A stretch of 64,000 bases of DNA, from assembly GCF_963921235.1 (NCBI RefSeq), contig NC_086124.1, positions 27,776,001-27,840,000 on the forward strand. The letters are read 5' to 3'. A program made the position numbers and the translations under genes. The DNA comes from Mobula hypostoma (taxonomy: Eukaryota). The notes below the pieces were generated by a model, which did not search any database, was not told the origin of the DNA, and saw only the letters and a list, made by a program, of their open reading frames with translations. Shown piece by piece: positions 4,496 to 53,100 of this stretch; positions within the stretch are counted from its first letter, which is position 1, and each line of letters starts with the position of its first letter.

Positions 4496-5656
4496 GTGAA
4501 AAATAATAACAATAATAAATAAATATAAGGAACATGAGATGAAGAGTGCTTGAAAGTGAGTCCATAGGTTGTGGGAACATGTCAGTGATGGGGCAATGGA
4601 ATTATCCACACTGGCTCAGGAGCCTGATGGTTGAGGGGTAATTACTGTTCCTGATCCTGGTGGTGTGAGTCCTGAGGCTCCTGCATCTCCTTCCTGATGG
4701 CAGCAGCGAGAAGAGAGAATGACCTGGGTCACTATAATTGTTAAATGTTGCTGTTTTCTCGTTGAATGTCACGCCCTGATCAACACACCACAGCATCCAG
4801 ACCATCTCCTCTCACAGTCTGCCGGAACCTCAGGTCCCACACCAACAGGTTCAGGAACAGTTATTACCCCTCAACCATCAGGCTCCTGAAGCAGCGTGGA
4901 TAACTTCACTCACCCCATCTCTGAACTGATTCTACAACGAATAGACTCACTTTCAAGTACTCTACAACTCGTGTTCTCAGAATTATTTGTTTGTTTGTTT
5001 AATATTTTGAACTTTGACTACGATTAACGGAGTGAAGCTCCCTCCACTCTGTCCCATTACTCACTCCCGGGGTCAGACACAGAGTGAAACTCCCTCCACA
5101 CCGTCCTATCACACACTCCCGGGCTCTGAGTTTATGAATTTTATACATCTTCATTCCAAACTGGTGTTTAGCTGATGATCCGTGCTCACTTTCCATTTTA
5201 TTTTACTTGGACAATATAAAAACAGTTTCAATTTTGCATTTTCTTTTCACATCATTAATTCTCACCCTCCCAGGTGCAGGTGACAGTGTTTAGAAACTTC
5301 CCTGCAGAAAACGTAAAAGAAAAAGGAAAAGACTGGTTAAACACAGAGTGACTGATAGATGGGTGCAAAGCAAAGTTTTTCACTGCACTTCGAGACGTGA
5401 TAACGATGAACCAATTTTCCTTTGCTGGTTACAGGTCTGTGGGACTGTCAGACAAGACTCAGACTGGAAGGGTGACTTGCTGACTGTGGTAAGACTGGCA
5501 ACACTGCAAAGTCTGACCAATCACTTCAGAAAACGTCAACGGCACTCACCTTCCCCTGGGTTGTCTCCACCTGTCAGGAGGTTACTTACTGCAGAATCTC
5601 CCCGGGCAAACTCCTCCCCGCCTGCAAGAGAACACACCGAAGCTGAAACCCCTGAT

Positions 5657-6104: not shown

Positions 6105-6216
6105 CTTTTGTGCAACGCTCTGCCCAGGTACAGTGTTACCAGCAACCCGATAACTCCCACTATGACTCCGACTGCACAGACAATAATCCCGGATGTGGGC
6201 ACAGGAGGAGGCAGAT
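6105..6216 (-). pseudogene. WA: WA-like connecting peptide and TM exon (intact, 112 nt)
   Basis: ctttaccccacag|...|gtgagg. Translates (D)LPPPVPTSGIIVCAVGVIVGVIGLLVTLYLGRALHK, with the class II alpha TM pattern C-x-x-G-x-x-x-G-x-x-G (compare HLA-DRA VVCALGLTVGLVG). Confidence 0.9.
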
Positions 6217-7621: not shown

Positions 7622-8300
7622 ATCGGTATTTACAGGGGGTCCCGCGGAGTGTGTCAGTATTTACCGGGGGTCCCGGGGAGTGTGTCGGTATTTACAGGAG
7701 GTCCCGGGGAGTGTGTCAGTATTTACAGGGGGTACCGCGGACTGCGTCAGTGTTTACAGGGGGTCCCAGGCAGTGTGTCAGTATTTACAGGGGGTCCCGG
7801 GGAGTTTGTCAGTACTTACAGGCGGTCCCAGGGAGTGAGCTGGTATTTACGGGGTGTCCCGGGGAGAGTGTTGGTGTTTACGGGGGTTCCCGGGGAGTGT
7901 GTCAGTATTTACAGGGGGTCCCGGGGAGCGTGTCGGTATTTACAGGGGGTCCCGGGGAGTGTGTCGGTATTTACAGGGGGTACCGCGGAGTGCGTCAGTA
8001 TTTACAGGGGATCCCGGGCAGTGTGTCAGTATTTACAGGGGGTCCCGGGGAGTGGGTCGGTATTTACAGGGGGTCCCAGGGAGTGTGTCAGTATTTACAG
8101 GGGGTCCCGGGGAGTGTGTCAGTATTTACAGGGGGTCCCGGGGTGCGTGTCAGTATTTAAAGGGGGTCCCGGGGAGAGTGTTGGTAATTATGGGGTGTAT
8201 CGGGGAGTTTGTCGGTATTTATAGGGGGTCCCGAGGAGTGTGTTGGTATTTACGGCGTGCCCTGAGCAGAGTGTTGGTATTTAAAGGGGGGTCCCAATGA
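7622..8300 (+). repeat. 31-bp GC-rich minisatellite, about 22 copies
   Basis: Unit about GGTATTTACAGGGGGTCCCGGGGAGTGTGTC; it explains the repetitive ORFs at 7568-8300. Confidence 0.95.
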
Positions 8301-8498
8301 GTGTGTCAGTAGTTCCAGGATCTTTGAACTTGTATCAGGATTTCAGGGGTCTCAGGAATGTTGATAAAATCTAACGGACAGTAAGGCTGTCAGGATTGAG
8401 AGGCCTTGATGTTTACAGTTTTGCTCCGTAACAGAAACCTTGGTTTTAGATACGTGACCCATGCTATTCTCTCCCTGTCGCTTTCCCAGCCAACATAC

Positions 8499-8781
8499 CT
8501 AGTGAGCACCTCAGCCCTTCTTCAAGGCTGACGTGTGCTGCCCGACAGCTGAATGTGTCCCCGCCCTTTGGCTCGATCCCAATGTACTTGCAGACGTTGA
8601 AGGTCCAGTCTGACTCCACCATCAGCTGCGATGATTGGACAGGCCCGGTGAACGGCTGCCTGTTGATCAGGAAGCTGAGCTCGATCTCAAATGGTTAGAA
8701 GTTCTCAGTGTAACACTACAAGGGTGTTCGACTTCTCTGGAGCATAGCCGTCTTCCGTCCAGATGTGGACGGTGGGTTTCT
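8499..8781 (-). pseudogene. WA: WA-like alpha2 exon, b2m-like Ig C1-set domain, disrupted
   Basis: gtgtcccag|...|gtatgt, 283 nt (282+1). Corrected frame reads KPTVHIWTEDGYAPEKSNTL*CYTENF*PFEIELSFLINRQPFTGPVQSSQLMVESDWTFNVCKYIGIEPKGGDTFSCRAAHVSLEEGLRCSL. Both Ig cysteines are present, and SQLMVESDWTF aligns with b2m SDLSFSKDWSF. Confidence 0.92.
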
Positions 8782-8954
8782 CTGGGACACGGAGCAACAG
8801 TCACCGTGAACAGGTCAAAGGTAAATGTCGATGTGGAAAGGTCAGCGTGAATGGGGCAAAAGTAACTGTGAATGTTCACAGGTTTGTCCTGAACACAACC
8901 AAACCTGTCCCTGAAATTCTGGGCAAATCAGGCGTAAGAGGGCCTCAAAGCTTC

Positions 8955-9190
8955 AGAGAAGGGATATATAAAGGTTTAGCGAAAGGGCAAAGGTCAGGGA
9001 TATGGAAAGGTTTAGTGAAAGGGCAAAAATCAGGGATATGGAAAAGTTTAGTGAAAGGTCAAAGATCAGGGATATGTAAAGGTTTAGCGAATGGGCAAAG
9101 ATTAGGGATATGGAAAGGATTAGCGAAAGTGCAAACATCAGGGATATGGAAAGGATTAGTGAAAGGGCAAAGATCAGGCAGATATACGAA
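8955..9190 (+). repeat. 36-bp tandem repeat, about 6.5 copies
   Basis: GGGATAT recurs every 36 nt from 8961; unit about TCAGGGATATGGAAAGGTTTAGTGAAAGGGCAAAGA. Confidence 0.9.
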
Positions 9191-10116
9191 AAGGACAGAA
9201 GTGCAGCTGATAGAGCCACTGCCTCATCCAGCTGACAGAGCCAGAGGATGTGGTGGAGGAGGGTTCTATTGGACTGAAAGACAATTAGACAGGTACACAG
9301 ATAGGCAAGATACATTGGCCAAATGCAGCTGATGGGGTCTAGTTCAGTTCAGAATGGATCACGAGAAGGTTCGAAATGTTTATAAAATTGAAATATTCAC
9401 TAATGTTCACAAGTAAGCGTTGAGTTGTATGAGATGCCGTTGAAACATAGAAACATAGAAAATAGGTGCAGGAGTAGGCCATTCGGCCCTTCGAGCCTGC
9501 ACCGCCATTTATTATGATCATGGCTGATCATCCAACTCAGAACCCTGCACCAGCCTTCCCTCCATACCCCCTGATCCCCGTAGCCACAAGTGCCATATCA
9601 TTGAGGCCTAATTTGGAGCATTGTGTGCATTTCTGGTCACCTGTCTGCAGGAATGATATCAATAAGATTGCAAGAGTGCAGAGAAAACTTATGAGGACTT
9701 GAGGACTTGAGGACCGGAGTTATTGGGAAAGGTTGAATAGGTTAGGACTTTACTCCCCGGAGTGTAGGAGAATGAGGGGAAGATTTGATTGAGATAAACA
9801 AAATTATGAGGGGTGCAGAGAAGCTAAACGCGAACAGGCTTTTTCCGCTGAGGTCGGGCGAGACTGGAGCTGGAGTTTGTGAGTTGAGAGTTAAGGGTGA
9901 AGTGAAAGGGAACCTCAGAGGTGTTGAGAATGTGGAACGAGCTGCCATCGGAAGTGGTGGTTGTAACTTTGATTGCAATATTTAAGAGATGCACCTGGAT
10001 GGGAGGGGCACGGAGGGTGATGGCCCGGGCGCACGCCGATTGGTTGATAGCTCGGCATGGGCTAGATGGGCCGAAGGTCCCGTTTCTGTTCGCTACAACT
10101 CTGCGTGGTGACTCAC

Positions 10117-10389
10117 TTCTCAGGACGCTCGAACTGTTCGTGAACTTCAGCATCTCCTTAGTGATGTCCAGCTGCCAGATCTGGATCCCGGTCGACCTCT
10201 CCTTGAACTGGTTCACCTCATCTTAGCCGAGTTCCTTTACCCTGTCTGTCTCAATTCTCTTGATGAAGAAGGTCTGGCGCTGGTAATCGTGGAAAAGAAG
10301 GGGGGAGGTGTTCGCGTCGAAGACCTTGCCGTTGGTTTCGGAACTCGGGCTGTAGCTGTAATACAGCCTTTCAGAGATGCTTTTAAACA
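10117..10389 (-). pseudogene. WA: WA-like alpha1 exon (273 nt, one in-frame stop)
   Basis: ctttattccaag|...|gtgagt, phase 1/1. Reads VFKSISERLYYSYSPSSETNGKVFDANTSPLLFHDYQRQTFFIKRIETDRVKELG*DEVNQFKERSTGIQIWQLDITKEMLKFTNSSSVLR. It has a C-terminal N-glycan sequon (NSS), as MHC alpha1 domains do, and joins in frame to the alpha2 exon. Confidence 0.8.
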
Positions 10390-16210: not shown

Positions 16211-19200
16211 GAGGGGAGTGTCCGCGATGATTTTTCCTGCACACTTCTTTGTCCTGGACACGCACAAGTCCTGCAGTGATGGTAAACTGCAGCCAATGCA
16301 GGGCACTGCCCTCGCAGTTCACTGTAGTTTTCGTCTACTGTGCGCGGATACAGTGAGATGATTGCTGTTTTCTTAGGAGGTTAAGGAAATTCTGCTCGTC
16401 ACTGACCATCCTAACTTCTGTCGAGAGTGTCCTGGCTGGTTACATCATGGCTTGCATGCGCAGGAATAGAAGGAGCTGCAGTATTAGTGGACTCAGGCCA
16501 ATGCATCACAGTCCCACCCCTTCTCACCATCAGTAGTGTTTGCCTCAGGAAAGCAACATCAAAGATTGCTGACCACTCAGGGCCACACCATCACTGCGCA
16601 GCTCCCATCGGTACAGGAGCCTGAAGTCCCACCCCACCAGGTTCAGAATCATCGACTTCCCTTCAACCATTCGGTTCTGCAACTGACCGGCACAACTCTA
16701 ATCACTACCTCGGTACAGTAACTCACCTTGATTACCGCTGGATCATGGTGTAGAAATATCTCTATTTTTCCCTTTCAGGGTTCTTTTGAAGACGCTGACC
16801 TGGAGTTACATGCTGACTTCAGTTCCTTGCGGGAATGGGACCCGCTCTCGGGGTCTCACGACTGGCCGTTATTCGTTATGCCAAGGACGCGGCCTAGAAG
16901 ACGCGCGAGCCTTCAGGGTTCTGGGATTTTGTGGCTCTGGAGGCGTGCGGACTCGAGGTCGGTGCCTCAGCAGGAATTTGGTGTGCCGTAGCAGCAGAGA
17001 GCTGGCTGCTAGCTGTGTGCCCAGAGACCCGAGATCTTTGGGCACAGAGCTCGGAAAAAGCGACGCAACAGACTTTTAACACCGTGAATCAGCGAGTGGC
17101 TTTGTTATGTCTCCTCTCTCGCTGTGAAACAGGGACATCTCTTTTTCCCTCATTTGGGAGAGAGAGAGAGAGCCCATGGTATGTTGAATACCGGGTGAAG
17201 GAGTAGTCTTTGGGCTACTACAAGTCTGTCTGTTTATTGATGCTTTGCTGTACGCTGGAGTGCTTGGTGAGGTGTGCAGCTGCTTTTTCGCTGGTGGGGA
17301 GGGGGTCATTGCTTTGCTGCTGCTTGTGCGTAGGAGGGGGAGCTGGGGGCGGGGCTTTGGAGTTCCTCCGTATTCGTTGATGTTTGCGAAGAAAAAGATA
17401 TTCAGGATTTATATTATATACATTTCTCTGACATTAAATGTACCTTTGAGAATTGCTACCTTTCTTGTATTTCCCTTGTAGTTTAACATTCTTGAGCTTG
17501 CCTTTTACATAATCACCTGTTCAGTGATTTTTCCAGCAATTACAGTATAGTGTTTCTCTATTTTTCTGGAAGCTTCTTATTTTGTCATGCCGCTTGAATC
17601 CAGCTATTTTTAGGTTGTTATCTCCAGTCTGAGTATGTCCTTTGTTCTATGGAATGCTGAAAGGCCTCGACAGAGTGGGTGTGGAGAGGATGTTTCCAAT
17701 GGTGGGGAGAGTCTAAGACCAAAGCACACAGCTTCAGATTGGAGGGGCATCCTTTTAGAACAGAGATGTGGAGCAATTTCTTTAGCCAGAGAGTGGTGAG
17801 TCTGTGGAATTTTTTGCCACAGGCGGCTGTGGAGGCAAACTCATTGGGTGTGTTTAAGGCAGAGGTTGATAGGTTCCTGATTAGTCAGGGCATGAAGACA
17901 GGAGACTGGGGCTGAGAGGGAAATGGATCGGCCATGGTGAAATGGCGGAGCAGACTCGATGAGCCAAATGGCCTAATTCTGCTCCAATATCTTATGGTCT
18001 TTATTAGGTATGCCTGCTTGATAATACAAATATCTAATCAGCCAATCGTGTGGCAGCAGCTCACTGCATTAAAAAGTATTTTTCATAAAAGTATTTCAAC
18101 ACACTGCTTTTCAAGATACTTTTTCGAACAAGCTAGTGTAAGTTTTCTTCTGTCCTGTTACACTGAAGGACTTTGAGTCAAGGCAAACTATTTATTTGAC
18201 TTTACCAGGAGTGACAGAAGGGTGTTGCAGGGTTGCCAGGGCTCCCTAGCTGTAGAGGAGAAAAGCTTAGATCAGATTATTTTGAGATTAAAAGCAAGTA
18301 ATGCTCAGGCTTTAGAAGGCATTGGTCAGACCACACTTGGAGCATTGTGAACAGTTTCAGGTCCCTTAGGTGTTGGCATTAGAGAAGGTCGAGAGGAGAA
18401 TGGTCCTGGGAATGAGAGGGTTAATAGATGAGGAGCATTTGATGGCTCAGGGATGTACTTGCTGGTGGTTAGAAGAATGATGGGGGATTCTCAATGACAC
18501 CTATTGAATATTGAAAGTCTTAGATAATGGATGTGGAGAGGATGTTTCCAATGGTGCAGGAGTCTAGGACCACAGGGCATAGAAGAAAAGAGACACTTTA
18601 GAACAGAGATGAGGAGGAATTTCTTTAGGCAGAGGGTGGTGAATCTGCAGAATTCATTGCCACAGATGACCGTGGAGGCAGAGTCACTGGGTGGATTTAA
18701 AGTGGGGGTTGATAGGTTGTTGTTTAGTAACGGCATTAACGGTTACGAGGAGAAGGCAGGAGAATGGGGTTGAGAGAGTAATAAAAAGGCCAATCGAATG
18801 GCAGAGAAAATCCGATGGGCTGAATGGCCAATTGGTCTTAAATCAGCCATTATTGTATGGAGACTCAATGGGCCCAATTCTGCTCCTCTGCCTTACAGTC
18901 TTATTGCCACCACTCAGCCAACTATGTAATGCAAGTCCCTTCAACATCAATAAGTTCCAAGTTACCCCCATTGACAAAGCACTCACCAATTTCCTCTCCC
19001 GTTACCATGGGAAATAGCAGGGCCATTAAGAAGCCGAAGAGGTCCATGTCTGTGGATGGCTCCTCTCTCCAGGAGCAATAAAAAGATGTGAACTGGGACT
19101 GTCCTGTTTATGAACGGGGCTTAGATTTTTGCTGACTACACAAGCCATGGTGAAGTAATTCAACTCCGCTGCTAGCGTGTCGATTTTATGAGTAACATTA

Positions 19201-21114
19201 ACTTGACAGCTACAGTAACAATCGTTAACAGGCAGTAGTTCAACTCTCAAACCGTTCTTCCCGAAGTAGCACGTTTCAATATACTTTCAGGAAATTTTAG
19301 ACCACACAGCACAGAGCAGTTATTGAAAGTGGCGATTTTGTCAAGTTAAAGTGTTTTGTGAAGTCTGTGTTTGGATTTACTTCACAGGATGGCTGATTTT
19401 GTAATGGAATTAAATCATGCCACATTCCAATTGACTTATCACGTGTGCATTGAAACATTACTCAATGGCTACTTTATTAGATACCTGCTGAAGTGTTTGT
19501 TTGTGGTCTTCTGCTGATGTTGCCCACCCTCTTCAAGGTTCAACATGTTGTGCATTCAGAGATGCTCCTCAGCACACCACTGTTGTAACGTGTGGTTATT
19601 TGAGTTGCTGTCGCCTTCCTGTCAGCTTGAACCAGTCTGGCCGTTCTCCTCTGACCTCTCTCATTAACGAGGCGCTTTCGCCCACCGAGCTGCCGCTCTG
19701 TGGATGTCTTTTTGTTTTTCACACCATTCTCTGTTAACTCTAGAGACAGTTGTGCATGAAAATCCCAGGAGATCAGCGGTCTTTGAGATACCCAAATCGT
19801 AACCGTCTGGCACCAACGGTCATTCCACAGTCAAGTAGTAATTTAGATTACATGTATTTCAAGATCGGCCCTTCCTGCCCTTTCGAGCCGCACCACCCAG
19901 CAACGCCCGATTTAACTCTGGCCTAATCGCAGGATAATTTGCAATGGCCAATTAACCTATTGACTAGTAGGTCTTTTGACTGTGGGAGGTAACCAGAGCA
20001 TTGGGAGGAAGCCCACGTGGTCACGGCGAGAACGTACAAACTCCTTACCGGCAGCGGCGGAAATTGAACCCGGGTCGCTGGTACCGTAAAGCGTTGCGCA
20101 GGCAGACTTCGTCCACTGAGTTTGGGCGAGACTAGAATTAGATATCGTGAGCTGCGGGTTGAAACATTTAAGCGGAACGAGGGGGGGGATCCTCTTCACT
20201 CAGAGGGTGGTGAAAGCGTGGAACGATCTGCCAGCAGGAGTGGTGGGCGTGGGTTTGGTTGCAACACTTGGGAAATTTGGGTGGGTATATGGACGGCAGG
20301 GGTAATGGAGGGCCAAGGTCCAGGTGCAGGTTGTTTGGGCTAGGCAGAATAACAGCTCGGCATGGACTAGATGGTCCAAAGAGCCTATTTCTGTACTGGA
20401 TGATCACCTGTCATCCAGAACATCTTCAAGAGGTGGTGACTCAAGAAGTTGGCATCTGTTGCCACTCTCTGGGACGTGCCCTCTTCTTGTTCGTACCATT
20501 GGGGAGGAGATACAGGAGCTGAAAACACACACTCAATGATTCACAAACTTCTTCCCCTCTGTCACTGGAGTTCTGAATGGACATTGAACCCGTGAACAGC
20601 ACCTCATTATTCCCTTGTCTGTTTTTTTGCACTGGGGATGGTGGTAGAGTCAGATACATGAGGGACATTTAACACAAAGACACATGGATAAAAGAAACAT
20701 GGAGGGGCGTGTGGGAGACAAGGGTTAAGTTGACCTTGGAGTGGTTTGTAAGGTCAGCCCAACAATATTCACAGTACATTTATTATCAAAGTATATGTAT
20801 ACTTTATACAACCTTGAGATTCGTCTCCTTATCGGCAGCCACAGAACAAAGAAACCCCAAAAAACAAATTTAAAGCAAAAGACCGACAAACACCCAATGT
20901 GGTGAGAGAATAAAAATAACAAATTGTGCAAACGATAGAAGTAAGTAAATAGCACTTAGAATGAAAGTAAGTCCTCAGGGACGAAGCCCAGCCATTTGGC
21001 CCATCGGGTCTACTTTGTCATTCAAGCCTAGCTAATTTAGCATGTCTCTCAACCCCATTCTCCTGCCTTCTCCCCGTAACCTTTAATGTCCTTACCCATC
21101 GAGAATTTTTCTAA

Positions 21115-21290
21115 CTCGGCACGGTAGTATAGCGGTTAGCGCGACACTTTACAGAACCAGTGACCCGGGTTCAATTCCCGCTGCTGTCTGTGAGGAGTTT
21201 ATACGTTCTCCCCATGACTGCATGGTTTTCCTCCGGGTGCTCTGGTTACCTCCCACCATCCAAAGATGCACCAGTTGGTAGCTTGATTGG
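21115..21290 (+). mobile_element. tRNA-derived SINE (elasmobranch HE1-like); many further copies in the window
   Basis: A-box and B-box-like head GGCACGGTAGTATAGCGGTTAGC...GGGTTCAATTCCC, followed by the TGTGAGGAGTTT..CGTTCTCCCC body that recurs at about 430, 20000(-), 22000(-), 28300, 50550(-) and 58850. Confidence 0.65.
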
Positions 21291-22204
21291 TCATTGGGCT
21301 AGGATTAAGTCATGGGGCTACAGGGTGCAGTGGTTTGAGGGCCAGAAAAGCATGTTCCACTCTGAATTTCAACCTCCGATTAAAAATTACATATCAACCT
21401 CCGCTTTAAATGACTGTATGTGGCAACAAATTCCACAGATTTACCACCCTCCAGCTAAACCAAATCCTCCTCATCTCTGTTCTAAAGGGGTGTCCTTCTA
21501 TTCTGTGAACCTAGACTTCCCTCCCCCACCCCGACATTGGAAACATGCTCTCCACGTCCACTCTGTCTAGGCCTTTTAATATTTGATAGGTTTCAATGAG
21601 ACCCCCCCCTCATTCTTCTAAACTCCAGCAAGTGCAGGCCCAAAGCCATCGAGCGCTCCTCATGGTTAACCCTTGCAATCCCAGGATCATTCTCGTGAAC
21701 ATCCTCTGGAGCCTCTCCAAGGCCAGCACATCCTTTCTTAAATAAGGGACCCAAAACTGCAAGTTCGGTCTGACCAGTGCCTTGTAAAGCGTCAGCATTA
21801 CATTCTTCCTTTAATATTCTAGTCCTCTCGAAATGAATGAATGAATGAACTATTATTATTGAAATACAGTGTGGAATATACTGCTCGTGAACCCCCATAT
21901 TTCATCCTACCCTAATCACAGGACAATCTACAAAGACCAATTAACCTACCAACTGGAACGTCTTTGCAACGTGGCAAGGAATTGGAGCATCCAGAGGAAA
22001 ATCACACGGTCACGGGTAGAATGCACGAACGCCTTACTGGCAACAGCGGGAATCGAACCTGGGTCACCTATACTGTAAAGTGTTTTGCTAACCACTACGC
22101 TACCAGGCTGTGTATGTAACACACATTTTCCTTCCTCACCCTGCAAGTTAACGTTTAGGGAACACCTAATTTCTGAATTTGCTCTCACCGCTTAGAAAAT
22201 AGTC

Positions 22205-22713
22205 TACGAAGGGTGATTGATAAGTTCGTGGCTAGAAGGAGAAAATTTTAGAAAACCTAGCACATTCATTTTTCCTACATTTACACACTTAGTCCAGCGG
22301 CCGTGGAGCATACGGATCCCTTCTTTGTAGAAGTCAGTGTCTTGGATCTCCAGAAAGTGGTCCACAGCAGGGATCATTGATAAGTTCATGGACTAAGGTA
22401 GAAGGAGATGAGTTATTAACTTCAAACTTTCTGCATAATCACTCAAAGAGTTGAGCTGCACATGCATGTAACGAGAGCTGTATAACTCATCTCCTTTCAC
22501 CCTAGGCCACAAACTTATCAATCACCCCTGCTGTGGACCATTTTCTGGAGGTTTGAGACGCCGATTTCTACAAAGAAGGGATCCGTATGCTCCACGACCG
22601 CTGGACTAAGTGTGTACGTGTAGAAGGGGACTATGTTGAAAAATAAATGTGCTAGGTTTTCTAAAATTGACTCCTTCTACCTTAGGCCACAGACTTATCA
22701 ATCACCCCTCGTA
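22205..22713. mobile_element. Mariner-derived palindromic MITE
   Basis: TA-flanked TIRs TACGAAGGGTGATTGATAAG / CTTATCAATCACCCCTCGTA. Both arms carry the transposase end FYKEGIRMLH(G/D)RWTKCV in opposite orientation. Confidence 0.85.
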
Positions 22714-23009
22714 TGTCTTTATTCCTTCTGCCAAAGTGCAGGACCATACACTTCCACTAGACTATACTTCATCTGCCTCTTCTTTGCAACCTCCACTTTA
22801 TATATACCCGATCCTGGAACATTTTAGGCACAGAACGCCAGATAGAAGTATACAAAGGAAGGGAAATAAACACTTGAAGTCATTAGGAGACAAGCAGGAG
22901 GCTGGTACAGCCTGCTCCCAGTGGGTGGAGTCAGGTGAAGTCCAAGGAATCCAGAACAGGTTTGCTCAGTACAATTGCTCAGCTGGTCCACCTCACTTCA
23001 AATACTCAC

Positions 23010-23028
23010 CTGTTTCGCTCAGACGCAT
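23010..23028 (-). pseudogene. WA: Candidate WA first (leader) exon, 3' part
   Basis: Strong phase-1 donor ACAG|GTGAGT at 23010/23009, compatible with the alpha1 exon. The nearest ATG (23028) gives only MRLSET; the open upstream frame reads LEVIVGSLMRLSET without an ATG. Confidence 0.45.
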
Positions 23029-23054
23029 CAGAGAGCCCACTATTACCTCCAAAG

Positions 23055-23121
23055 ATGAGCGTTTGCTGCAGGTTGGCCTTCGCGGCTCTCCTAGTGGTCT
23101 CTGTCGCGGCCACCCAGAGCG
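23055..23121 (+). CDS. WB: WB-like exon 1, signal peptide MSVCCRLAFAALLVVSVAATQS
   Basis: ATG in AAAGATGA context, hydrophobic core, donor G|GTAAGT. Confidence 0.9.
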
Positions 23122-26100
23122 GTAAGTTGGCTCAAATCCTCTGGCACGCCACCGGACTGTCTTCCCGTAGGTCTGCGCCTCGGACCGTCTCCTAGCACAG
23201 GCTGTGAGGAGGAATTGGGGAGCTCTGAGCCACACCAGATTGGGGGCGGGGGGCGGGGGGCAGGGGATTGGTTAGAAGCTGTTCAAAGTTAGGAGAGACT
23301 TTGATAATGTTCATGGTGGGAAGCTGTTCTCACAACCCGGTGATTCAGTCAGAAAGAAACAGGGAAAGGTAAACTAGAAACTGGTAAAGAAAAAAAAATA
23401 TGATTCTATATTGTCTCTCTTTTAAACCAGATTTCTGGAGACAGATAGACAGGAAGGGTATCACACACAAAGAACTCAGATGATCGAGATGGCGCAGGCG
23501 GCAATTTGCGGGCGGCTCAGAAAACTTCTAGATATACAATGTTTCTTCTGAAGTGTTATCACTGCAGTCTGCAGCCTGTAATTTCTTTTTTAGGTTGTTA
23601 GTTGTTTTGTTTTGCATTTGCAGTTTACCTTCTTTGCCTGTCTTTAGCTTGTGTGTAGTTTTTCATTGATTCCTTTGTGTTTGACTGCGAATACCCGCAA
23701 GGAAATGAATCTCAGGGTGGTACGACGTAGATGTACTTTGATAAATAACTTACTTTGACGTCTGGTGGAGAGAAATAACCTGCTGATGTTTCAGGCTGTG
23801 ATGATGACAGCAGTGTGTGTGTGTGTGTGTGTGTGTACAGGGTCTGCATTTCCAGCACCTACAGGGTCTCGTGTCAGGAAGGGTCCTCACAAAGATCTCA
23901 CTCTGGGTATAATGGTGCCCGTGGCCTGTACAGGCTCACCCTCTGGGTAAAATGATCTCTGTGGTGTGTACAGGCGCACCCCCTGGGTAAGACGATCCCC
24001 ATGGGGTGCAGACATCCCACCCTGCAAAAACTGATTTCAGAGAGGTAGCATCATCAATTTGCGGGAGTCTTCCGGAAGAGGTGGGATGTCTGCAATAGAG
24101 TAGCTCCTTAGCAGCCAGCCAGCTAGTTTAAATAAGGTTAGCTATGCTAATGAACGAATGACACCTGTTAAACTCACCTCAACTTGTCTTTTACAGTCTT
24201 AACCCACCATGGGCAATAGAAAAGTCACTGTTGCAAACAGTGCAGCGAGCAACACTGTCGTTATTTTTTACCCCTATTAGGCAGGGGTACACTTTAGTGT
24301 AGTCTGGGGTGACGCACGTTTTATATTTTCTTTCTTTGGAACACTCTGCCATGGTGCGCTCTCGCTGTCTCTCTTGTGCTCTCGCTTGCTTGCTCTCTCG
24401 CGCGCTCTCGCTTGCTTGCTCTCGCGCGCTTTCTCTCTCGCTCACTCTCAAAAAACTTGATTTCTGTGATATTGTATATAATTTGCGGGCATCAGGGAGC
24501 CACTATTCATATGCAGGAGACTCCCGGAACTTCCGGGAGAGGTGGGATGTCTGGGTGTGTACAGGCCTACCCTCTGGGTAAAACGATCCCTGTGGAGTGT
24601 ACAGACCCACCCTCTGGGTAAAACGATGCCCGTGAAATATACAGGCCCACCCTCTGGGTAAAACGATCCCTGTGGTGTGTACAGGCCCATCCTCTGAGTA
24701 AAACGATCCCTGTGGTGTATACAGACCCACCCTCTGGGTAAAACGATACCCATGAAATATACAGGCCCATCCTCTGGGTAAAACGATCCCTGTGGTGTGT
24801 ACAGACCCACCCTCTGGGTAAAACGATACCCGTGAAATATACAGGCCCACCCTCTGGGTAAAACGATCCCTGTGGTGTATACAGACCCACCCTCTGGGTA
24901 AAACGATCCCTGTGGTGTATACAGACCCACCCTCTGGGTAAAACGATACCCGTGAAATATACAGGCCCACCCTCTGGGTAAAACGATCCCTGTGGTGTAT
25001 ACAGACCCACCCTCTGGGTAAAACGATCCCTGTGGTGTATACAGACCCACCCTCTGGGTAAAACGATCCCTGTGGTGTATACAGACCCACCCTCTGGGTA
25101 AGACGATACCCATGAAATATACAGGCCCACCCTGTGGGTAAAACGATGCTGCGAAGTGTCTAACAATGGGTTGTTATTGCTTCTTTTAGATATGCACCTC
25201 TTTCACGTCCAGTGTGAGTGCCTCTTCCGTGGCCTTGAAGTGGACGACATACGCTTGCGTTACGCCTATGATGGTGTTACTATCATGTACTACAACACGG
25301 AGATTAAGAGGTATGTTGCAGCCCAGCCCATGGCACAGGCTGAGGTAGACAGGCGGAACTCGGAGCACGACTATGTTACATCGGTGCCTCACCGAATTGA
25401 GAGCATCTGCGATGAGATCAAGCAGGCGGTCAGATCAAGCAACATCACCCTGGAAAACATGGGTAAGATAGTTTAAAATTTACGATCACGTGTATGTCAA
25501 AACACCTTGTGTGCATTAACCATCAATACATCCCAGTGTGTGCTGGGGGCAGCCCGCCAGGGTCACCACACAATCCGCTGCCAAGATAGCACGCCTACAA
25601 TACTCCAGCGAACCCGGACACCATCGGGCTTTGACCTCTCCAATGGACTCACAGATTTGGCTCCTGCGGACGGGCCTTGACTTTCGAACCCTGACCCTGG
25701 GACACACTGATCACCGAACACCTGGCCTTGAAATCCAGACTCGCCAATGATGGGACCTCGAACTCCGCACCACGTCTGCGTCGCTGGTCTTCGAGCTTCA
25801 CATCAGTAGATAGGTCAAACACAGCACCATTGACCCAACTTCTCCCCACCCATCAAAGGGCCAAAATCAAGGCGGACCCCCTTGGTGGCCTTTGGTCCCT
25901 ATCCCTGGAAAGCTTTCCTAGCTAAACTTAGCTGTTCATTCAGGGCCTCGAGCAGTCCCTCCAGGTGAGGCAACACCTCACCTGCAAATCTTCTGGGGTC
26001 ATTCCACTGTGTCTGGGCCTCCTTGATGTTGGTGAGACCCACCATAAATTGGGGGGTCAGCTTCATCGAGTACCTCCGCACCATCCGCCACCAGTGGGAT

Positions 26101-41100: not shown

Positions 41101-44100
41101 CAGGCTATCAGAATGCTCTCTACGGTACAACTGTAGAAGTTCTTGAGTGTATTTGCTGACATGCCAAATCACTTCAAACTCCAAATTCTATCAGTCTGGT
41201 CCACGTACCATCAATCTAGAATATGTTCCATCAATCAGTCACCGCTGATTAACAGAAACCCTTTCTCCAGTCCTGCTGAAGGGTTTTGGCCCGAAATGTC
41301 GACTGTACTTTTTTCCATAGATGCTGCCTGGCCTGCTGAGCTCCTCCAGCATTTTGTATGGGTTGCTCGTATTTCTAGCATCTGCAGATTTTCTCTTGTT
41401 TGTGATTCAATAACTTGCAGTGTTCTGTTCTCCAATTCCTTCACAGCTCCTACCCATACCAGAGCCTTCATGCAGAAGAAACGGGGTCAAATGTACCTGG
41501 TGTGCACGGCCAGGAACTTCTTCCCCCGGGACATTAAAGTGCACTGGGTCAGAAACGGGGAAGTCGCTGACAATGGATCAGACACGACCAACGTTGTCCC
41601 TCAAAGCAATGGAGCCTTTCAAGTTAGGAGCGTCCGCCCCCTGGATGGAGACAGCTGGGGGTACGTCTGTCAGGTGGAACACGAGGCAGTTGATGGGAAG
41701 TTGCAGATACCTCTTGGTAAGAACAGCGAGTTGGGGAAATGTCGACTGATGTGATAAAAAACATTGATATCTACTTGATGACACAGAATCCCTCATCGTC
41801 CCTTTCTGTCCCCAAGTAAGTCCCAATAGCTTGAGACCTCTCTCATTGTCTATGCTACTGGCAATTATTATCATCAAGTCATACAGCTGAATACAAGGCC
41901 ATTCAGCCCAACACATCCATACTAACTAACAATCACCAGTACACACCGACTCTCCTCACTGAGGCTCATCCCCTTTTTTGGCGGAGAATCTTGTGAGATC
42001 CTGAGATTCTGAGAGCGATGTCGGTGGGAGCTTGGCTCCTGGTAGGGTCACCCATTGTGGTGAGGGTGGGGGGAGATTCCAGATAAGTGGCAGATGGAGT
42101 TTAACCCAGCTTGATGTGAGGTATTGCATCTTGGTAGGGCAAATGTAAGGCGACAGTACACCGTGTTGCTGAGTAGAGAGATCTTGGGATTCAAGTTCTT
42201 AGGACTTTGAAAGTGACTACACAGGTGGTTACGAAGGCTTATGGAATGCTTGCTTTTATTAGTCAAGACATTGAGTTCAAAGGTCAAGAGGTTATGTTGC
42301 ATAAACTCTGGTTAGGCCACATCTGGACTACCGCATACAGATCTCATCATCAGGAAAGATGTTGAGGCTTTGGAGAGGGTGCAGAAGAGGTTTACCAGAA
42401 TGCCGCCTGGTTTAGAGAGCATGTGCTATCATGGAAAGCTGGGCAAACTTGGGTTGTTTTCTCTGGAGTAGCAGAGGCTGAGGGGAGATCTGAGAGAGGT
42501 TTACAAGATTATGAGCAGCAGAGATGGAGTGGACGGGGGGGGGGGGATGAGTACCTGTTTCCCAGGGTTGAAATGTCTAATTCCAGAGGGCATGCATTGT
42601 AGGTGAGAGGGGCTAGGTTCACGGGGGATATGAGGGGTAGTGTTTTACTCAGAGTTGTGGACGCCTGGAATGCGCTGCCTGGTATGGGGGTAGAGGCAAA
42701 TACATTAGAGGCTTTTAAGAGATGTTTGGAGAGGCACATGGATGTAATGGAGATAGAAGGATATGGACATGGTATAGGTCGGAGGGATTAGTGTTTGATG
42801 TGCTTTTTAGTTGGTTCAGCACAACATTGTGGGCCAAAGGGCCTGTTACTGTACTGTCCTATGTTCTAAAGAGCATTTCAACTGAGATCTCAGTGGTGGA
42901 GCTGGCGGAAGATGATAACACATGGCAGCAGCAATGAAGGCGGGGGAAGGCTGCAGTGGTGAAGGATCCCCAGTCGTTTTGCATTCCAGGCCACGGGACC
43001 CTGACCCCGATCTGTCAAGGACCATGTGGTGGCTGCCAGTGCATCAGCCTCCCCACACAGAGCCACTCCTAGATGATCTCCTTTAGACCATAAGACAAAG
43101 GAGCAGAAGTCGGCCATTCGGCCCATCGGGTCTGCTCCACCATTTTATCATGAGCTGATCCATTCTCCCATTTAGTCCCACTCCCCCGCCTTCTCATCAT
43201 AACCTTTGATGCCCTGGCTACTCGGATACCTATCAATCTCTGCCTTAAATACACCCAATGACTTGGCCTCCACTGCTGCCCATGGCAACAAATTCCATAG
43301 ATTCACCACCCTCTGACTAAAAAAATTTCTTCGCATTTCTGTTCTGAATAGGCGCCCTTCAATCCTGAAGTCATGCCCTCTCGTACTAGACTCCTCCATC
43401 ATGGGAAACAACTTTACCACAACCACACTGTCCATGCCTTTCACCATTGGAAATGTTTCTATGAAGTCTCCCCTCGTTCTTCGAAACTCCAAGGAGTACA
43501 GTCCAAGAGCGGACAAACGTTCCTCACATGTTAACCCTCTCATTCCCGGAATCATTCTAGTGAATCTTCTCTGTACCCTCTCCAACGTCAGCACATCCTT
43601 TCTTAAATAAGGAGACCAAAAATGCCCACAGCACTCCAAGTGAGGTCTCACCAGCGCCTTATAGAGCCTCAGCATCACATCCCTGCTCCTATACTCTATT
43701 CCTCTAGAAATGAATGCCAACATTGCATTCGCCTTCTTCACTACCGACTCAACCTGGAGATTAACCTTAAGGGTATCCTGCACGAGGACTCCCAAGTCCC
43801 GTTGCATCTCAGAACTTTGAATTCTCTCCCCATTTAAATAATAGTCTGCCCGTTTATTTTTTCTGCCGAAGTGCATAACCATACACTTTCCAACATTGTA
43901 CTTCATTTGCCACTTCTCTGCCCATTCTTCCAATCTATCCAAGTCTCTCTGCAGACTCTCCGTTTCCTCAGCACTACCGGCCCCTCCACCTATCTTCATA
44001 TCGTCAGCAAACTTAGTCACAAAGCCATCTATTCCATAATCCAAATCGTTGATGTACAATGTAAAAAGAAGCGGCCCCAACACGGACCCCTGTGGAACAC

Positions 44101-47100
44101 CACTGGTAAATGTCAGCCAACCAGAATAGGATCCCTTTATTCCCACCCTCTGTTTCCTGCCAATCAGCCAACGCTCTATCCACGTATGTAACTTTCCCGT
44201 AATTCCATGGGCTCTTATCTTGTTAAGTAGCCTCATATGTGGCACCTTGTCAAAGGCCTTCTGAAAATCCAAATATACAACATCCACTGCATCTCCCTTG
44301 TCTAGCCTACCGGTAGAGAGAACAACTTTGAGAGAACAACCACTTGAGGGAACATCTTACTTGACTCGAGTGATTACCCTTCTACCAATTCTCTTTACAG
44401 GGATTTGGATCGTAGCCTCCTATGTCTTGCCAACTCAGATGCAATCGGTACAAAGTTATCGTCACTTGAATGAGCCAATCCCTCCTGCCTTGTGAGAAAC
44501 ACACGAGGGAAATTAAATTTTACAACAGTCTCATTGGAGACTGGATAATTTCCCCACCCCCAAGTGGAAATGGACAATGCTCCTGCTCTCCCCTCTCTAA
44601 CTCAAACACGTCTAGCACATCAGCCATCTTGTCAGCAGAATAAGAACCTAGAACCTAGTGGGACTAGGTGAGAGTAAGAGTTCGGCACGGACTAGAAGGG
44701 CCGAGATGGCCTGTTTCCATGCTGTAATTGTTATGTGGTTAAAATCAATCCAACCCTTCCCTTTCACAGAGCCCTCCATTTTACTATCATCTATGCGCCG
44801 ATTTAAGACTCCTAAATGCTCCTAATGTATCTGCCTCTACTACCACCCCATGCACAAACACTCTCTGTGTAAAAAGTCTCACCTCTGACACTCCCCTATA
44901 CTTTTCTCCAATCACCTTCAAGTTGTGCCTCCTCATAGTAGCCAGTTCCACCTTGGCTACTCGATCTAGGCCTCTTATCACCATATACGCCTCTACACCT
45001 CTTCTCCTCCTTTGCTCCAAAGAGAAAACCCTGAGATTGCTCAGCCTATCCTCAGAAGGTATGCCCTCCAATCTGGGCAGCATCCTGGTAAATCTCCTCT
45101 GCACCCTCTCTAAAGCTTCCACACCCCTTCAGTGTTCAGTGACTGGAACCGAACACAATACTCCAAAATTAAGATTATTGTGCATCATATTGAACTGAGT
45201 CACAGTGTAATCCCCTTGTCTGTGCAATTGTTTGCATCTCCCTATGGTTCAACACCAAACTGCGCTGAGACAGATTAACAGAGTTTTATTGTACATACAG
45301 ACACACCTAGGATGGTGGGGTGGATGTATGTCTCTGCCAAAGGAGGTGTGAGACAGTCCTTCCCTCTGCTAGTCTGCAGGTCACCCTTGGGCAAATGTAG
45401 CATCTGCTTAGCCCCCCGATCAGGGTCACGTGAAACCATGGGAGCAGGTGGTGGATGGTTGTGTGAAAAGCCAGTGCAGATCACAAGTCCTGGTTATGCA
45501 ACCACTGACACCAGGCAGACACTCTCTGAAGAGTACTGATAATGGCTGGGGTCACTCGTCTTGTAAAGACAATAAGAAACCGCTTCTGTAGAAATATTTG
45601 CCAAGAGCGATTGTGGTCATGAAAGGGCCATGATTGCCCACGTCATACGACACGGCACATAACGAACAGACAGTCCCATCAGAATTATTTTGGCATTAGA
45701 CGATACATTGGGGAACAGTGCTGCTAGATTTTCAGAAAAATTACCCAGACATCGCAAAATCTCCAACGTTTTCTCCTCAGAACACAACGCACTGGTTGAG
45801 AATGAAGATTTGATCATTGTTGGAGTTGTTCTGGGGGTACTCGGGCTGTGCGCAATGGTGGTGACTGGAAGCTTGTACTACTGCTCCTCAGAGGGTAAGT
45901 GGCTGCAAGACTTACAGAGAGACTCAGGGAACAGTCACCGGACTGTTTTCTGCTAAAGTGCTTCAAGAAAGGATCAAACTTGTTTTTGATGAACCACCGG
46001 GGAGCCACTCCCATGGAGCACCTTCTCTGGGTCCATCACCAGAGGCAGGGTTTCCCAGTGGCCACCCATTTCAATCCCACTTCCCATTCGGACTTCCTCC
46101 CATCTAGAGCGGAGAGCTGACCAGCTGCATCACGGCCTGGCGTGGAAACCCCAGTGCCCAGGACTGGAGAGGCCAACAGAACGAGGAGGATACAGCCCAG
46201 TGGTTCCTTAAGGTTGCCATAGCCGGGGTGGGCCAAGGTGGGGATGAGCTCCCACTACCCATTACGTGGCCTCAGTCATGGCGAAGACTAGGCCGGAAGC
46301 CACAGTGTCACCTGTTAGCAGCTGCCCAGGGGGAGTGTCCATGATGGGGTGTCTATGCTTGAGTCAGGGTTGCCATCCCCTCCCCCCTTTCCCCATCCCT
46401 CCTGCACATCCCCAGTGATTTTTGGACAGAAGACAAGCCATACTGTACTCGACTGCAGACTGCTGCAATGTTCATGGACCCAGGGGCTTGGACTACCCTT
46501 TTTGGGTGATTGTATTTTACTGCTATCTTACGGTACTGTGAAAAAGCCCTCGGCACGTATAGGCGCGGAAGACGTTTGCACGGTGGATTTGTCAATGTGG
46601 AGTGGACAGCGAGTTTGTAAATCTGGCGGGAGCAAAGGATGTTGGGAGTGGTGAGGGTGGCGTGTGGGACAGGTGGCAGAGAAGGAGTTGCCAGGGGAGG
46701 GAGAGGGGTGGCATGGATGCAGACACACCCAGCCCTGAGACACCAGGCAAGGTTATTTGATTCTAAACAATTGGTTTATTTATCATTACAGAACGACTCT
46801 CCTGTGCTTCCCGCTCCCTCCCCTCTCCCTTCCCCTTTCCCCAACCATGATTCCCCTCTCCCCGTCCCCTTCCCACTCTCACTCCACAATAGAGATCCAC
46901 ATCAGAATTATGAAATCATGTCATGAAATTATATTTTTTTGCAGCAATATATAAAATTACTACAGTACTGTGCAAATGTCTTAGGCACTCTAGCGATATA
47001 TATGAGTGATTCTTCAATTAGCGGCCCTTTTGACTACTTGAAATTCTGAAAAATGAAATTTCTGGAAACTCTGTTTGCTTTATATTATAATCTTTATTTT

Positions 47101-50100: not shown

Positions 50101-53100
50101 TGTGAACATTATCGGGACATGGGTGGAGTGGTGGTACAGATTCGATGAGCCAACTGGCCTCATTCTGCTCCTATACCTTATGGTATAACTTCTCCACACA
50201 GAAAGGGTGGTGGGTATACGAAACGAGCTGCCAGGTGATGCTGTAGAGGTGGCTACATTTGCAATGTCTAAAATGCATGGACAGGAAAGGTTTGGATCAA
50301 CGTTGGCCAAACACAGGCAAGTGGGACGAGCTTACATAGACAATTGGTTGGCATGGATGAGTGGGGCCAAAGGACCTGTTCCTATGGGATATAAATCTAC
50401 GACTCGATCGATGTATGGTTTATTTTTTTTTATATTTAGAGATACAACATGGTAACAGGCCCGTGCTGCCCAAATGCACCAAGTGACCAATTAACCTGCT
50501 AACCTGTATCTGTTTGGGTTTTGGGAGGATACCTGAGCACCTGGAGGAAACCATGTGGTCACGGGGAGAAGGTACAAACTTCTTGCAGACAGTGGCGGGA
50601 ATTGAACCCGGGTCACTGGCGCTGTAATGGCATTACATTAACCATTATGCCACTATGCCACTCCAGTGTAGCAAAGAGCTTCGTATTTTCAGTGCTAAAG
50701 GTAGGAAAATCTTTAAAAAAGCAATAATTTAGATGAAAGAAATTGACATTTTTGGTTGACGTATTGAACATAGAACAATGCAGGCCCTTACAGAAGTGAT
50801 CGAAACAAGAGATATCCAGACAGAGTGCAAAGTGGGAGGGTGTTCCCATTGTCAGCAGGGTCAAAGTTCAGAGGTCACATGGATACAACATAAGGAGAAG
50901 AGAATTCAGGAGAAATTTTTCCACATGGTGTGGTCAGAATCTCGAAGGCTCTGTCAGCAGGTGCGGTGGAGGTGAGCACCACTGGGGCTTTGGAGGGCGA
51001 ATTGGATAAGGACGTGTTAGAAAAATGTGCCGTGGGGAGATGGGGTGGAGTTGGGGAAGTTCTCTGGCAGAGAGCGGTCAAAGACATGATGGGATGGCAA
51101 GCCCTGTTTTTCTGCTGGAACTACTCTGATTTTTCTTTTCAGGCTTGTTGTCAACCATCTGATCTCTTGTTTCTCCCACAGGGGCAAAAGTGCTGAACTC
51201 TCAGCAGACAGGTGAGAAAAATCAATGCTGGTCTCGGGACGGGACGGGACGGGGGGGCACGGAAATCTCCAAAATGTCTATGTGGTGAAGGAACTTAGAT
51301 CAATATTACATTAGATTATGAGGACACGCAGTCCTCTTTTATTGTCATTTAGTAATGCATGCATTAAGAAATGATACAATGTTCCTCCAGAATGATATCA
51401 CAGAAACACAAGACAAACCAAAACTGAAAAACTGACAAAAACCACATAATTATAATATATAGTTACAACAGTGCAAAGCAATACCGTAATTTGATAAGAA
51501 CAGACCATGGGCACTGTAAAAAGAAGTCTCAAAGTCTCTAGAAAGTTCCATCATCTCACGCAGACAGTAGAAGGAAGAGAAACTCTCCCTACCATGAACC
51601 TCCAGCGCCGCAAACTTGCCGATGCAGCATCCTGGAAGCACCCGACCACAGCTGACTCTTGAGTCCGTCCGAAAACTTCGAGCCTCTGACCAGCCCTCCG
51701 ACACGGAGCACCGAGCACCATCACTGCCCAGCGCTTCGACCCCGGCCCCAGCAACAGGCAACAGGCAATAGGCAAAGCCGAGGATTTGGGGCCTTCCCTT
51801 CCGGAGATTCTCAATTGCACAGTAGCAGCGGCAGCGAAGCGGGCATTTCAGAAGTTACTCCAGTGTTCCTCCGCACTTCTTACGTCTGTCTCCATCAAAT
51901 CAGGATTGTGCACTGCCCCTAGTTACAAATACGATATCATTTCGGAGTGGCCGCGCGCGCTGCGTCACGCCGCCATCTTCTCCTCCCCTCCCCATACATT
52001 CGCTGGTATTCAGAAGAATGAGAGGGAATCTTATAGAAAGATGCATATAAAGTTATGAAAGGAGAAGATAAGACAGAGGCATAAGACCATAAGACAACGG
52101 AGCAGAATTAGGACATTTGGCCCATTGAGAGTCTGCTCCACCATTCCGTCACGGCTGATTTATTATCGCTCTCAATCCTGTTCTCCTGCCTTTTCCCTGT
52201 AACCTTTGGTGCCATTACTAATCAAGAACCTGTTGACCTCCATATTAAATATATGCGTGACTTGCACACATGGTGACGAAAAGTTTACATCCTTTGATGA
52301 TAATAAATTTGCTTTGAACTGGCACGGAGGAGAGGAGAGGAGGTGTGGGGTAGATCAGCCATGACTGACAGGGCAGAATTGAGGGGCCGAGTGGCCTACC
52401 TGTGCTCTTTGTCTTGATGTAATTGCCATGGGTGTCGGGGTGGAGATACATCTCTACCAACGGTGGTGTAAGGTGCTCCTTCCCTCCGCTGGCCGGCAGG
52501 GCACCCTTGGGCAAGGTGTAGCACCTGCTTAGCCCCCGATCAGGGTCCTGTGAAGCCATGGGAGCAGGTGGTGGACGGTCATATGAGCAACTGGCGCATA
52601 TCACAAGTCTTGGTTGTGTGACCACTGATGCCAGGCAGACAATCTCTGAAGCGTATTGGTGGGGCGGGGGGGGGTGGTCACCCGTCTTGTAAAGACACTG
52701 CCCAGAAAGCGGCAATGGCAAAGCACGTCTGTAGAAAAATTTGCCAAGAACAATCACGATCATGGAAAGTTCCACCTCATCTGACACAGCACATAACGAA
52801 TGAACGATTCACTTTGCAGGGCTCAGGAGGGCTTATTGCTAACCTGAGCCTTCTACTACAGCAGCGTGACCCTTCCAAGGGTCAAAGAGTTGTCACTGAT
52901 GAAGTTAAACTTTGAACCAACATTTCTTGCTCAGCCTCTTGTAAACAAGGAACAATGGAGTCCACGTTGGCCTAGTGATTGAAGAATAGGAATTTATTTA
53001 ATCTGTGGGACTCATTGCTACTGATGGCTGTGGAGACCAAACTTTGGGCATATTTAAAGTGGAGGTTTGATAGGTTGGGCATGTGGCCAAGTGGTTAAGG

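Follow-up and report, generated by a model that had tools for sequence, protein, structure and literature searches.

Here, we identify in the devil ray Mobula hypostoma a head-to-head pair of W-category MHC genes in which the alpha gene, WA-psi, carries three stop codons and a frameshift, while the beta gene, WB, has an intact frame and is transcribed. We consider it likely that WA-psi is a dead duplicate and that WB is a working gene, the most likely partner of which is a second, surviving WA (WA2) in a multi-copy W cluster. The simplest account of this situation is ordinary birth-and-death evolution of a tandem multigene W cluster.

Structure and decay of WA-psi

The window, i.e., the whole 64-kb stretch of M. 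hypostoma DNA that was analysed, contains one W-category pair, with WA on the minus strand and WB on the plus strand (Table 1). The start codons at 19047 (-) and 23055 (+) lie 4.0 kb apart in head-to-head orientation; WA-psi extends over five exons from 19047 to 5582 and WB over seven exons from 23055 to 55498. Searches of the window by tblastn with WA and WB proteins, including a divergent beta1 type of Hypanus, returned no further W exons. In M. hypostoma, NCBI has no gene called within 10 kb of WB and none that is coding at WA-psi. In Hemitrygon, Hypanus and Pristis, an intact WA (254-255 aa) lies about 4 kb from the WB orthologue in head-to-head orientation. In the Pristis stretch examined, one called WA accompanies two WB-type genes, one of them without a modelled beta1, and unequal numbers of alpha and beta genes therefore seem common. 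The alpha1-alpha2 intron of Pristis WA also holds an extra alpha2-like fragment (L002:14407-14550) that is 59% identical to residues 104-150 of Pristis WA. An arrangement of the M. hypostoma pair with overlapping 5' ends at 22990-23280 was rejected, given the WA-psi leader at 19047 and an RNA depth of zero over 23176-23551. A Y-box/CCAAT-like motif, GATTGGTTA, lies at 23260-23280 in WB intron 1, directly after a G-rich run; RNA depth over this motif is zero.

Table 1. Features of the WA-psi/WB locus, in window positions
Feature	Position	Strand	Remarks
WA-psi last coding exon	5582..5621	-	RGGVCPGRFCSK, then TAA
WA-psi CP/TM exon	6105..6216	-	Open; 35/38 residues identical to M. birostris WA
WA-psi alpha2 exon	8499..8781	-	b2m-like C1-set; 283 nt, i.e., 282 plus one inserted base
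WA-psi lesion, Tyr140 to TAA	8697-8695	-	In alpha2
WA-psi lesion, Tyr133 to TAG	8718-8716	-	In alpha2
WA-psi lesion, one extra base	8719-8721	-	In alpha2; frameshift
WA-psi alpha1 exon	10117..10389	-	273 nt; codon 76 is TAA, Gln in intact WA
WA-psi lesion, Gln76 to TAA	10225-10223	-	In alpha1
WA-psi leader exon	18987..19047	-	ATG at 19047; 18/20 residues identical to M. birostris WA
Intergenic region between WA-psi and WB starts	19048..22961	.	About 4 kb; spacing matches Hemitrygon, Hypanus and Pristis
WB exon 1, 5'UTR and leader	22962..23121	+	ATG at 23055; RNA contigs start at 22962-23027
WB beta1 exon	25190..25462	+	Class I alpha2-like; AYDG motif
WB beta2 C1-set exon	41447..41716	+	Pro57 and Gly61, no Trp61
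WB connecting peptide/TM exon	45781..45894	+	
WB cytoplasmic exon 5	51182..51211	+	
WB cytoplasmic exon 6	54040..54138	+	
WB last coding exon with stop	55470..55498	+	

WA-psi has the architecture of a class II alpha gene, with leader, alpha1, C1-set alpha2 and CP/TM/CY on separate exons, and the interval 8499-10389 reaches from the 3' end of its alpha2 to the 5' end of its alpha1. The alpha2 piece matches the C1-set domain with E=2.9e-8, and C1-set domains are the only ones that Pfam detects in WA and WB. Lesions were called by aligning WA-psi with the intact WA of M. birostris, Hypanus sabinus, Hemitrygon akajei and Pristis pectinata. In this alignment to four intact ray proteins, WA-psi has exactly four lesions, in agreement with the first-pass annotation, which had listed a TAA in alpha1 and a +1 insertion, a TAG and a TAA in alpha2. 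Once the extra base is removed, WA-psi reads as 255 codons plus stop, equal in length to M. birostris WA. The splice sites, Ig cysteines and TM exon had been described as preserved, and indeed all splice dinucleotides are canonical (8/8), the TM and tail exons are open, and the second Ig cysteine and the W61 tryptophan are retained. In addition to the lesions, alpha2 shows a Tyr8 to Trp substitution and a Tyr to Cys change. With three stops, one frameshift and a rate that is relaxed relative to its sister sequence, WA-psi has the features of a non-processed duplicated pseudogene.

In the alpha1-alpha2 intron of WA-psi, we noted a 36-nt (or 108-nt) tandem repeat at 8960-9186 and an interspersed repeat of very high copy number at 9435-10124, for which the contig depth in runs of two species is as high as millions (DNA) and hundreds of thousands (RNA). 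The alpha2-TM intron contains a 31-nt minisatellite of about 22 copies with 82% match (7626-8319), and intron 1 contains a LINE-type element on the plus strand (13719-16183) with long open frames that are endonuclease- and reverse-transcriptase-like.

Support for the lesions in sequencing data was sought in Logan contigs rather than raw reads, and in these contigs paralogues are mixed at 88% likeness. A DNA contig of run X1 spans 10105-10238, including the alpha1 TAA, with no differences from the assembly. The sole X1 contig across 8715-8720 has the extra base, while this base is missing (as a 1-nt deletion at 8720) in X5 contigs, which come from a related species, and in X14 contigs of an expressed paralogue. 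At the level of assembled contigs, the alpha1 stop and the extra base are supported, and the two alpha2 stops are incompletely supported. At position 8715, the same X1 contig has C for A, which on the minus strand changes the first Ig Cys to Gly; to judge from this combination with the frameshift, the contig probably represents a second WA-psi haplotype with extra damage.

The first-pass annotation had taken the preserved features of WA-psi as a sign of recent inactivation. Several lines of evidence contradict this idea. A maximum-likelihood tree places WA-psi and M. birostris WA in one clade (support 95/91), with the WA proteins of stingrays as its sister group, and the two Mobula WA copies therefore go back to a duplication within the Mobula lineage or were homogenised later. 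The branch leading to WA-psi is about sevenfold longer than that of its sister (0.14 vs 0.021, ratio 6.7), and in a Tajima relative-rate test with Hypanus as outgroup, 28 private replacements fall on WA-psi vs 5 on the sister (p=6.6e-5), an asymmetry with which three other outgroups agree. If neutral, these 28 replacements correspond to about 39 substitutions, a drift of 0.051 per site, at which 1.4 stops would be expected (3 are observed, P=0.16) and all 16 splice bases would remain unhit with P=0.44; therefore, the preserved splice sites and cysteines are no argument for recent inactivation. The predicted chain-contact positions of WA-psi, Tyr8 among them, are changed at 14/63 vs 19/125 elsewhere. 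To judge from the sequence, the interface positions are not spared and have changed no less often than the other positions.

In a related species (organism B), contigs diverge from the WA-psi intron by roughly 2-8% and are without the extra base and several WA-psi-specific changes; part of the WA-psi decay is therefore specific to M. hypostoma. In RNA run X14, contigs on the WA exons came from the paralogue and none from WA-psi, an observation on one run in which contigs drop rare variants. Pairwise dN/dS between WA-psi and Pristis WA is 0.26-0.28, which does not differ from the value for WB (0.23-0.28). This measure was rejected as a test of WA decay, since most of the long branch separating the two sequences was functional, and we therefore relied on the relative-rate tests.

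Membership in the W category

The pair had been assigned to the W category, and the residues that characterise this category bear out the assignment, i.e., the b2m-like Trp61 in WA and Pro57 together with Gly61 in WB. Trp61 in the b2m-like alpha2 domain of WA, together with Leu55, is the name-giving feature of the W category (PMC8713811). WA-psi retains this feature in SSQLMVESDWTF, with the motif SDWTF, which aligns with Triakis WA. Tyr8 in WA alpha2 forms a bond to Pro57 of WB beta2 (PMC8713811); here, WA-psi has Trp (HIWTE) vs Tyr (HIYTE) in all intact WA. This loss of Tyr8 fits decay of what would be a former member of the category rather than non-membership. The nearest published relatives of WA-psi are, in the same tree, the Triakis scyllium 'MHC class II alpha chain like protein' (WA), and WA is 52-60% identical to Triakis scyllium WA. 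The N-terminus of WA alpha1 matches the 'DS5-like' sequences in the SI of PMC8713811.

In WB, the beta2 stretch VVPQSNGAFQ contains Pro165 (Pro57) and Gly169 (Gly61), and the Trp61 of class II is absent. The first half of beta1 has a RYAYDG motif that is class I alpha2-like (A32, G35), with Thr in place of Asp37, and the best two-domain matches of WB in the PDB are alpha2-alpha3 chains of class I. On sequence grounds, the pair is of the WA_DS5-like/'next-to-DS5' WB type.

The shark WA_DS5-like/WB_Nds5-like pair (PMC8713811) shares with the Mobula pair the head-to-head orientation, Tyr8 and Trp61 in WA, Pro57 and Gly61 in WB, and a location in a multi-copy cluster. It differs in that we describe a batoid copy with a pseudogenised WA beside an active WB; the main text of PMC8713811 describes neither ray clusters nor dead alpha genes. 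Copy numbers vary in sharks: the houndshark has three WA_DS5 loci and two WB_DS1 loci with one possible pseudogene, and the great white shark has three WA/WB pairs (Okamura et al. 2021, PMC8713811 SI).

Transcription of and constraint on WB

The joined WB exons give an uninterrupted frame of 882 nt, as the first-pass annotation had stated, and the translation equals XP_062890962.1 (293 aa), which carries the NCBI name 'SLA class II ... DQ beta chain-like' and to which the beta2 exon is 100% identical. WB is also expressed. All sampled words of the beta1 exon are present in each of four M. hypostoma RNA samples, and in every sample (4/4) a single contig, 2.1-2.3 kb long, passes directly from 23121 to 25190, skipping a GT..AG intron, with zero mismatches and extends into the first 30 bases of the beta2 exon. 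Within WB intron 1, a repeat at 23928-24585 is heavily represented in RNA contigs of 4/4 samples, and the rest of the intron has depth zero. In an RNA run of organism B, only 0.07 of the WB beta1 exon words are present.

A measurement of dN/dS, one of the checks that had been proposed, gave 0.23-0.28 for WB against its orthologue in the sawfish Pristis, a distant outgroup that is blind to recent relaxation; by domain, the values are 0.15-0.20 for beta1 and 0.25 for beta2. With the sawfish as outgroup, the relative rate gives 13 private replacements in Mobula WB vs 20 in Hemitrygon WB (p=0.30). WB therefore shows no sign of relaxation or rate acceleration compared to Hemitrygon WB, which has an intact WA next to it.

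Two WB gene models in related rays are unusual. The M. birostris model XP_072102616.1 starts inside beta2 and is without leader and beta1. The Hypanus sabinus model XP_059805721.1 has a VDGYDGETIVYY-type beta1 that is about 40% identical to M. hypostoma WB beta1, together with a beta2/TM close to the M. hypostoma WB type and no gene called within 10 kb; from its sequence, it may represent a second lineage of WB beta1 or be a chimeric gene model.

WA2 and the partner of WB

The locus had been interpreted as that of an orphaned W beta chain. That the adjoining WA is dead and WB intact stands; the orphan status is not supported, because a spliced WA paralogue is expressed in RNA of the same species. 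In RNA run X14 of M. hypostoma, a WA contig of 788 nt has the alpha2 exon directly joined to the alpha1 exon, and the transcript is therefore spliced. This contig has 48 differences from WA-psi and is free of the extra base, and 14 of the 15 listed non-synonymous differences convert the WA-psi residue to that of M. birostris WA (XP_072102696.1). M. hypostoma therefore expresses a second WA, WA2, and does so in the same RNA as WB. Judged by this partial list of contig differences, WA2 is the orthologue of the intact 255-aa XP_072102696.1, the gene for which spans 11.7 kb in M. birostris with no called neighbour within 10 kb. Among the protein-search matches for the Rhinoraja WA and M. birostris WA queries, there was no M. 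hypostoma WA protein, and NCBI may therefore not model WA2 as coding in this assembly.

Modelling of the complex had been suggested as a further check. The predicted complex of the ectodomains of WB and M. birostris WA, used for the paralogue, scores 0.79 vs 0.21 for the best control; this mark is reached by 51/78 solved complexes and 2/108 mismatched pairs, and the score reports likeness to known MHC dimers, may reflect MHC structures known to the model and does not single out one WA member. At least 93% of contacts are shared among the three runs, and the pLDDT of the partner is 80. In the model, WB Pro165 contacts WA Tyr119 and WB Ala48 contacts WA Trp170, which are class I-like contacts described for the W family (PMC8713811). 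Of the three options that the first-pass annotation had put forward, pairing of WB with a WA paralogue elsewhere is favoured, since an expressed WA2 was found. With a second expressed WA, WB is probably not orphaned, and the modelling is consistent with WA2 as its most likely alpha partner.

In an alternative scenario, WB would be decaying with a lag after losing its sole functional partner, such that its frame and its transcription are residual. The death of the cognate head-to-head WA would fit this scenario, as would the 7/172 residues at which WB differs between M. hypostoma and M. birostris, a number that is not very low for close species, and the M. birostris WB model without leader and beta1. 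However, we consider it unlikely, because WB is correctly spliced with zero mismatches in all four RNA samples, because neither the comparison with Hemitrygon (13 vs 20) nor the dN/dS of 0.23-0.28 indicates decay, and because an expressed WA paralogue is present. Moreover, without a partner, WB would have been exposed to decay for as long as WA-psi, which has drifted by about 5%, and yet it has 0 lesions in 882 nt. Alternatively, the WA null could be a polymorphic haplotype or an assembly artefact, with functional alleles of the same locus pairing with WB. Null alleles of class II alpha genes do segregate in other species, the two alpha2 stops are incompletely covered by contigs, and contigs of a related species are without the extra base. 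By contrast, four independent lesions and 28 private replacements imply long drift rather than a young null allele, the X1 DNA contig is identical across the alpha1 TAA region, and the other X1 contig, with its Cys to Gly change, looks like a haplotype that shares the frameshift. NCBI, too, is without a coding gene at WA-psi. These observations make a polymorphic or artefactual null very unlikely. One such null is that of mouse H2-Ea, the null haplotypes of which have a promoter deletion and are a young polymorphism beside an intact H2-Eb. The mouse locus is similar to the Mobula locus in having a dead class II alpha gene beside an intact, transcribed beta gene, the product of which sometimes pairs with the alpha chain of another isotype, but WA-psi, unlike the mouse null, is an old duplicate that has drifted heavily and has an intact paralogue.

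It had also been speculated that WB has switched to free beta-2-microglobulin (b2m) as its partner, in a parallel to the proposed origin of class I; in a wider form of this idea, WB would dispense with WA altogether and reach the surface with b2m, alone or as a homodimer. If true, WB with b2m or alone would represent an extant intermediate step between the class II and class I types of subunit arrangement. In favour of the idea are the best alignment of WB beta1-beta2 to class I alpha2-alpha3 chains in the PDB, the retention of Pro57 and Gly61, which face b2m in class I, and the b2m-like alpha2 domain of WA. However, the class I-like residues are shared by the W category in general, in which they function in WA/WB pairing (PMC8713811), and the WA paralogue that is expressed retains both Tyr8 and Trp61 and gives a good model with WB. 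In class II architecture, the membrane-distal platform is built from alpha1 and beta1, and with b2m as partner the alpha1 half would be missing. A b2m partner for WB is unsupported and, given WA2, not needed, and we regard a WB that works without any WA as extremely improbable. By the refutation rule that the first-pass annotation had set, the idea of a switch to a non-WA partner is refuted if an intact WA paralogue is the usual partner of WB, as is likely.

Returning to the likely scenario of a dead WA-psi and a WB partnered by WA2, we suggest the following course of events. Duplication of WA in the Mobula lineage would have given rise to WA-psi as a non-processed duplicated copy, which would then have drifted almost neutrally by about 5% per site. 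During this drift, WA-psi would have gained three stops, one frameshift and many replacements, including those of contact residues (Tyr8 to Trp; loss of Tyr133 and Tyr140). WB, in turn, would have stayed a working gene that is transcribed, correctly spliced and under constraint. The functional heterodimer would combine the chains that survive in two neighbouring pairs, or one WA would serve several WB, as with DRA and DRB. In HLA-DR, one DRA serves several DRB genes, and DRB pseudogenes are present. HLA-DR is similar to the W cluster in that working alpha and beta genes are unequal in number in a tandem cluster, duplicates are pseudogenised and one alpha chain plausibly serves several beta chains; it is unlike the W cluster in belonging to another MHC category and in that the dead member of the Mobula pair is an alpha gene located head-to-head with a live beta gene.

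The finding does not have the bearing on the origin of class I that had been hoped for. It documents the W category in a devil ray, in which working alpha and beta genes are unequal in number. If WB pairs with the WA of a neighbouring pair, this would be a natural re-pairing between duplicated MHC heterodimer genes, and such a re-pairing would help to address how closely the alpha and beta chains of the W category co-evolve.
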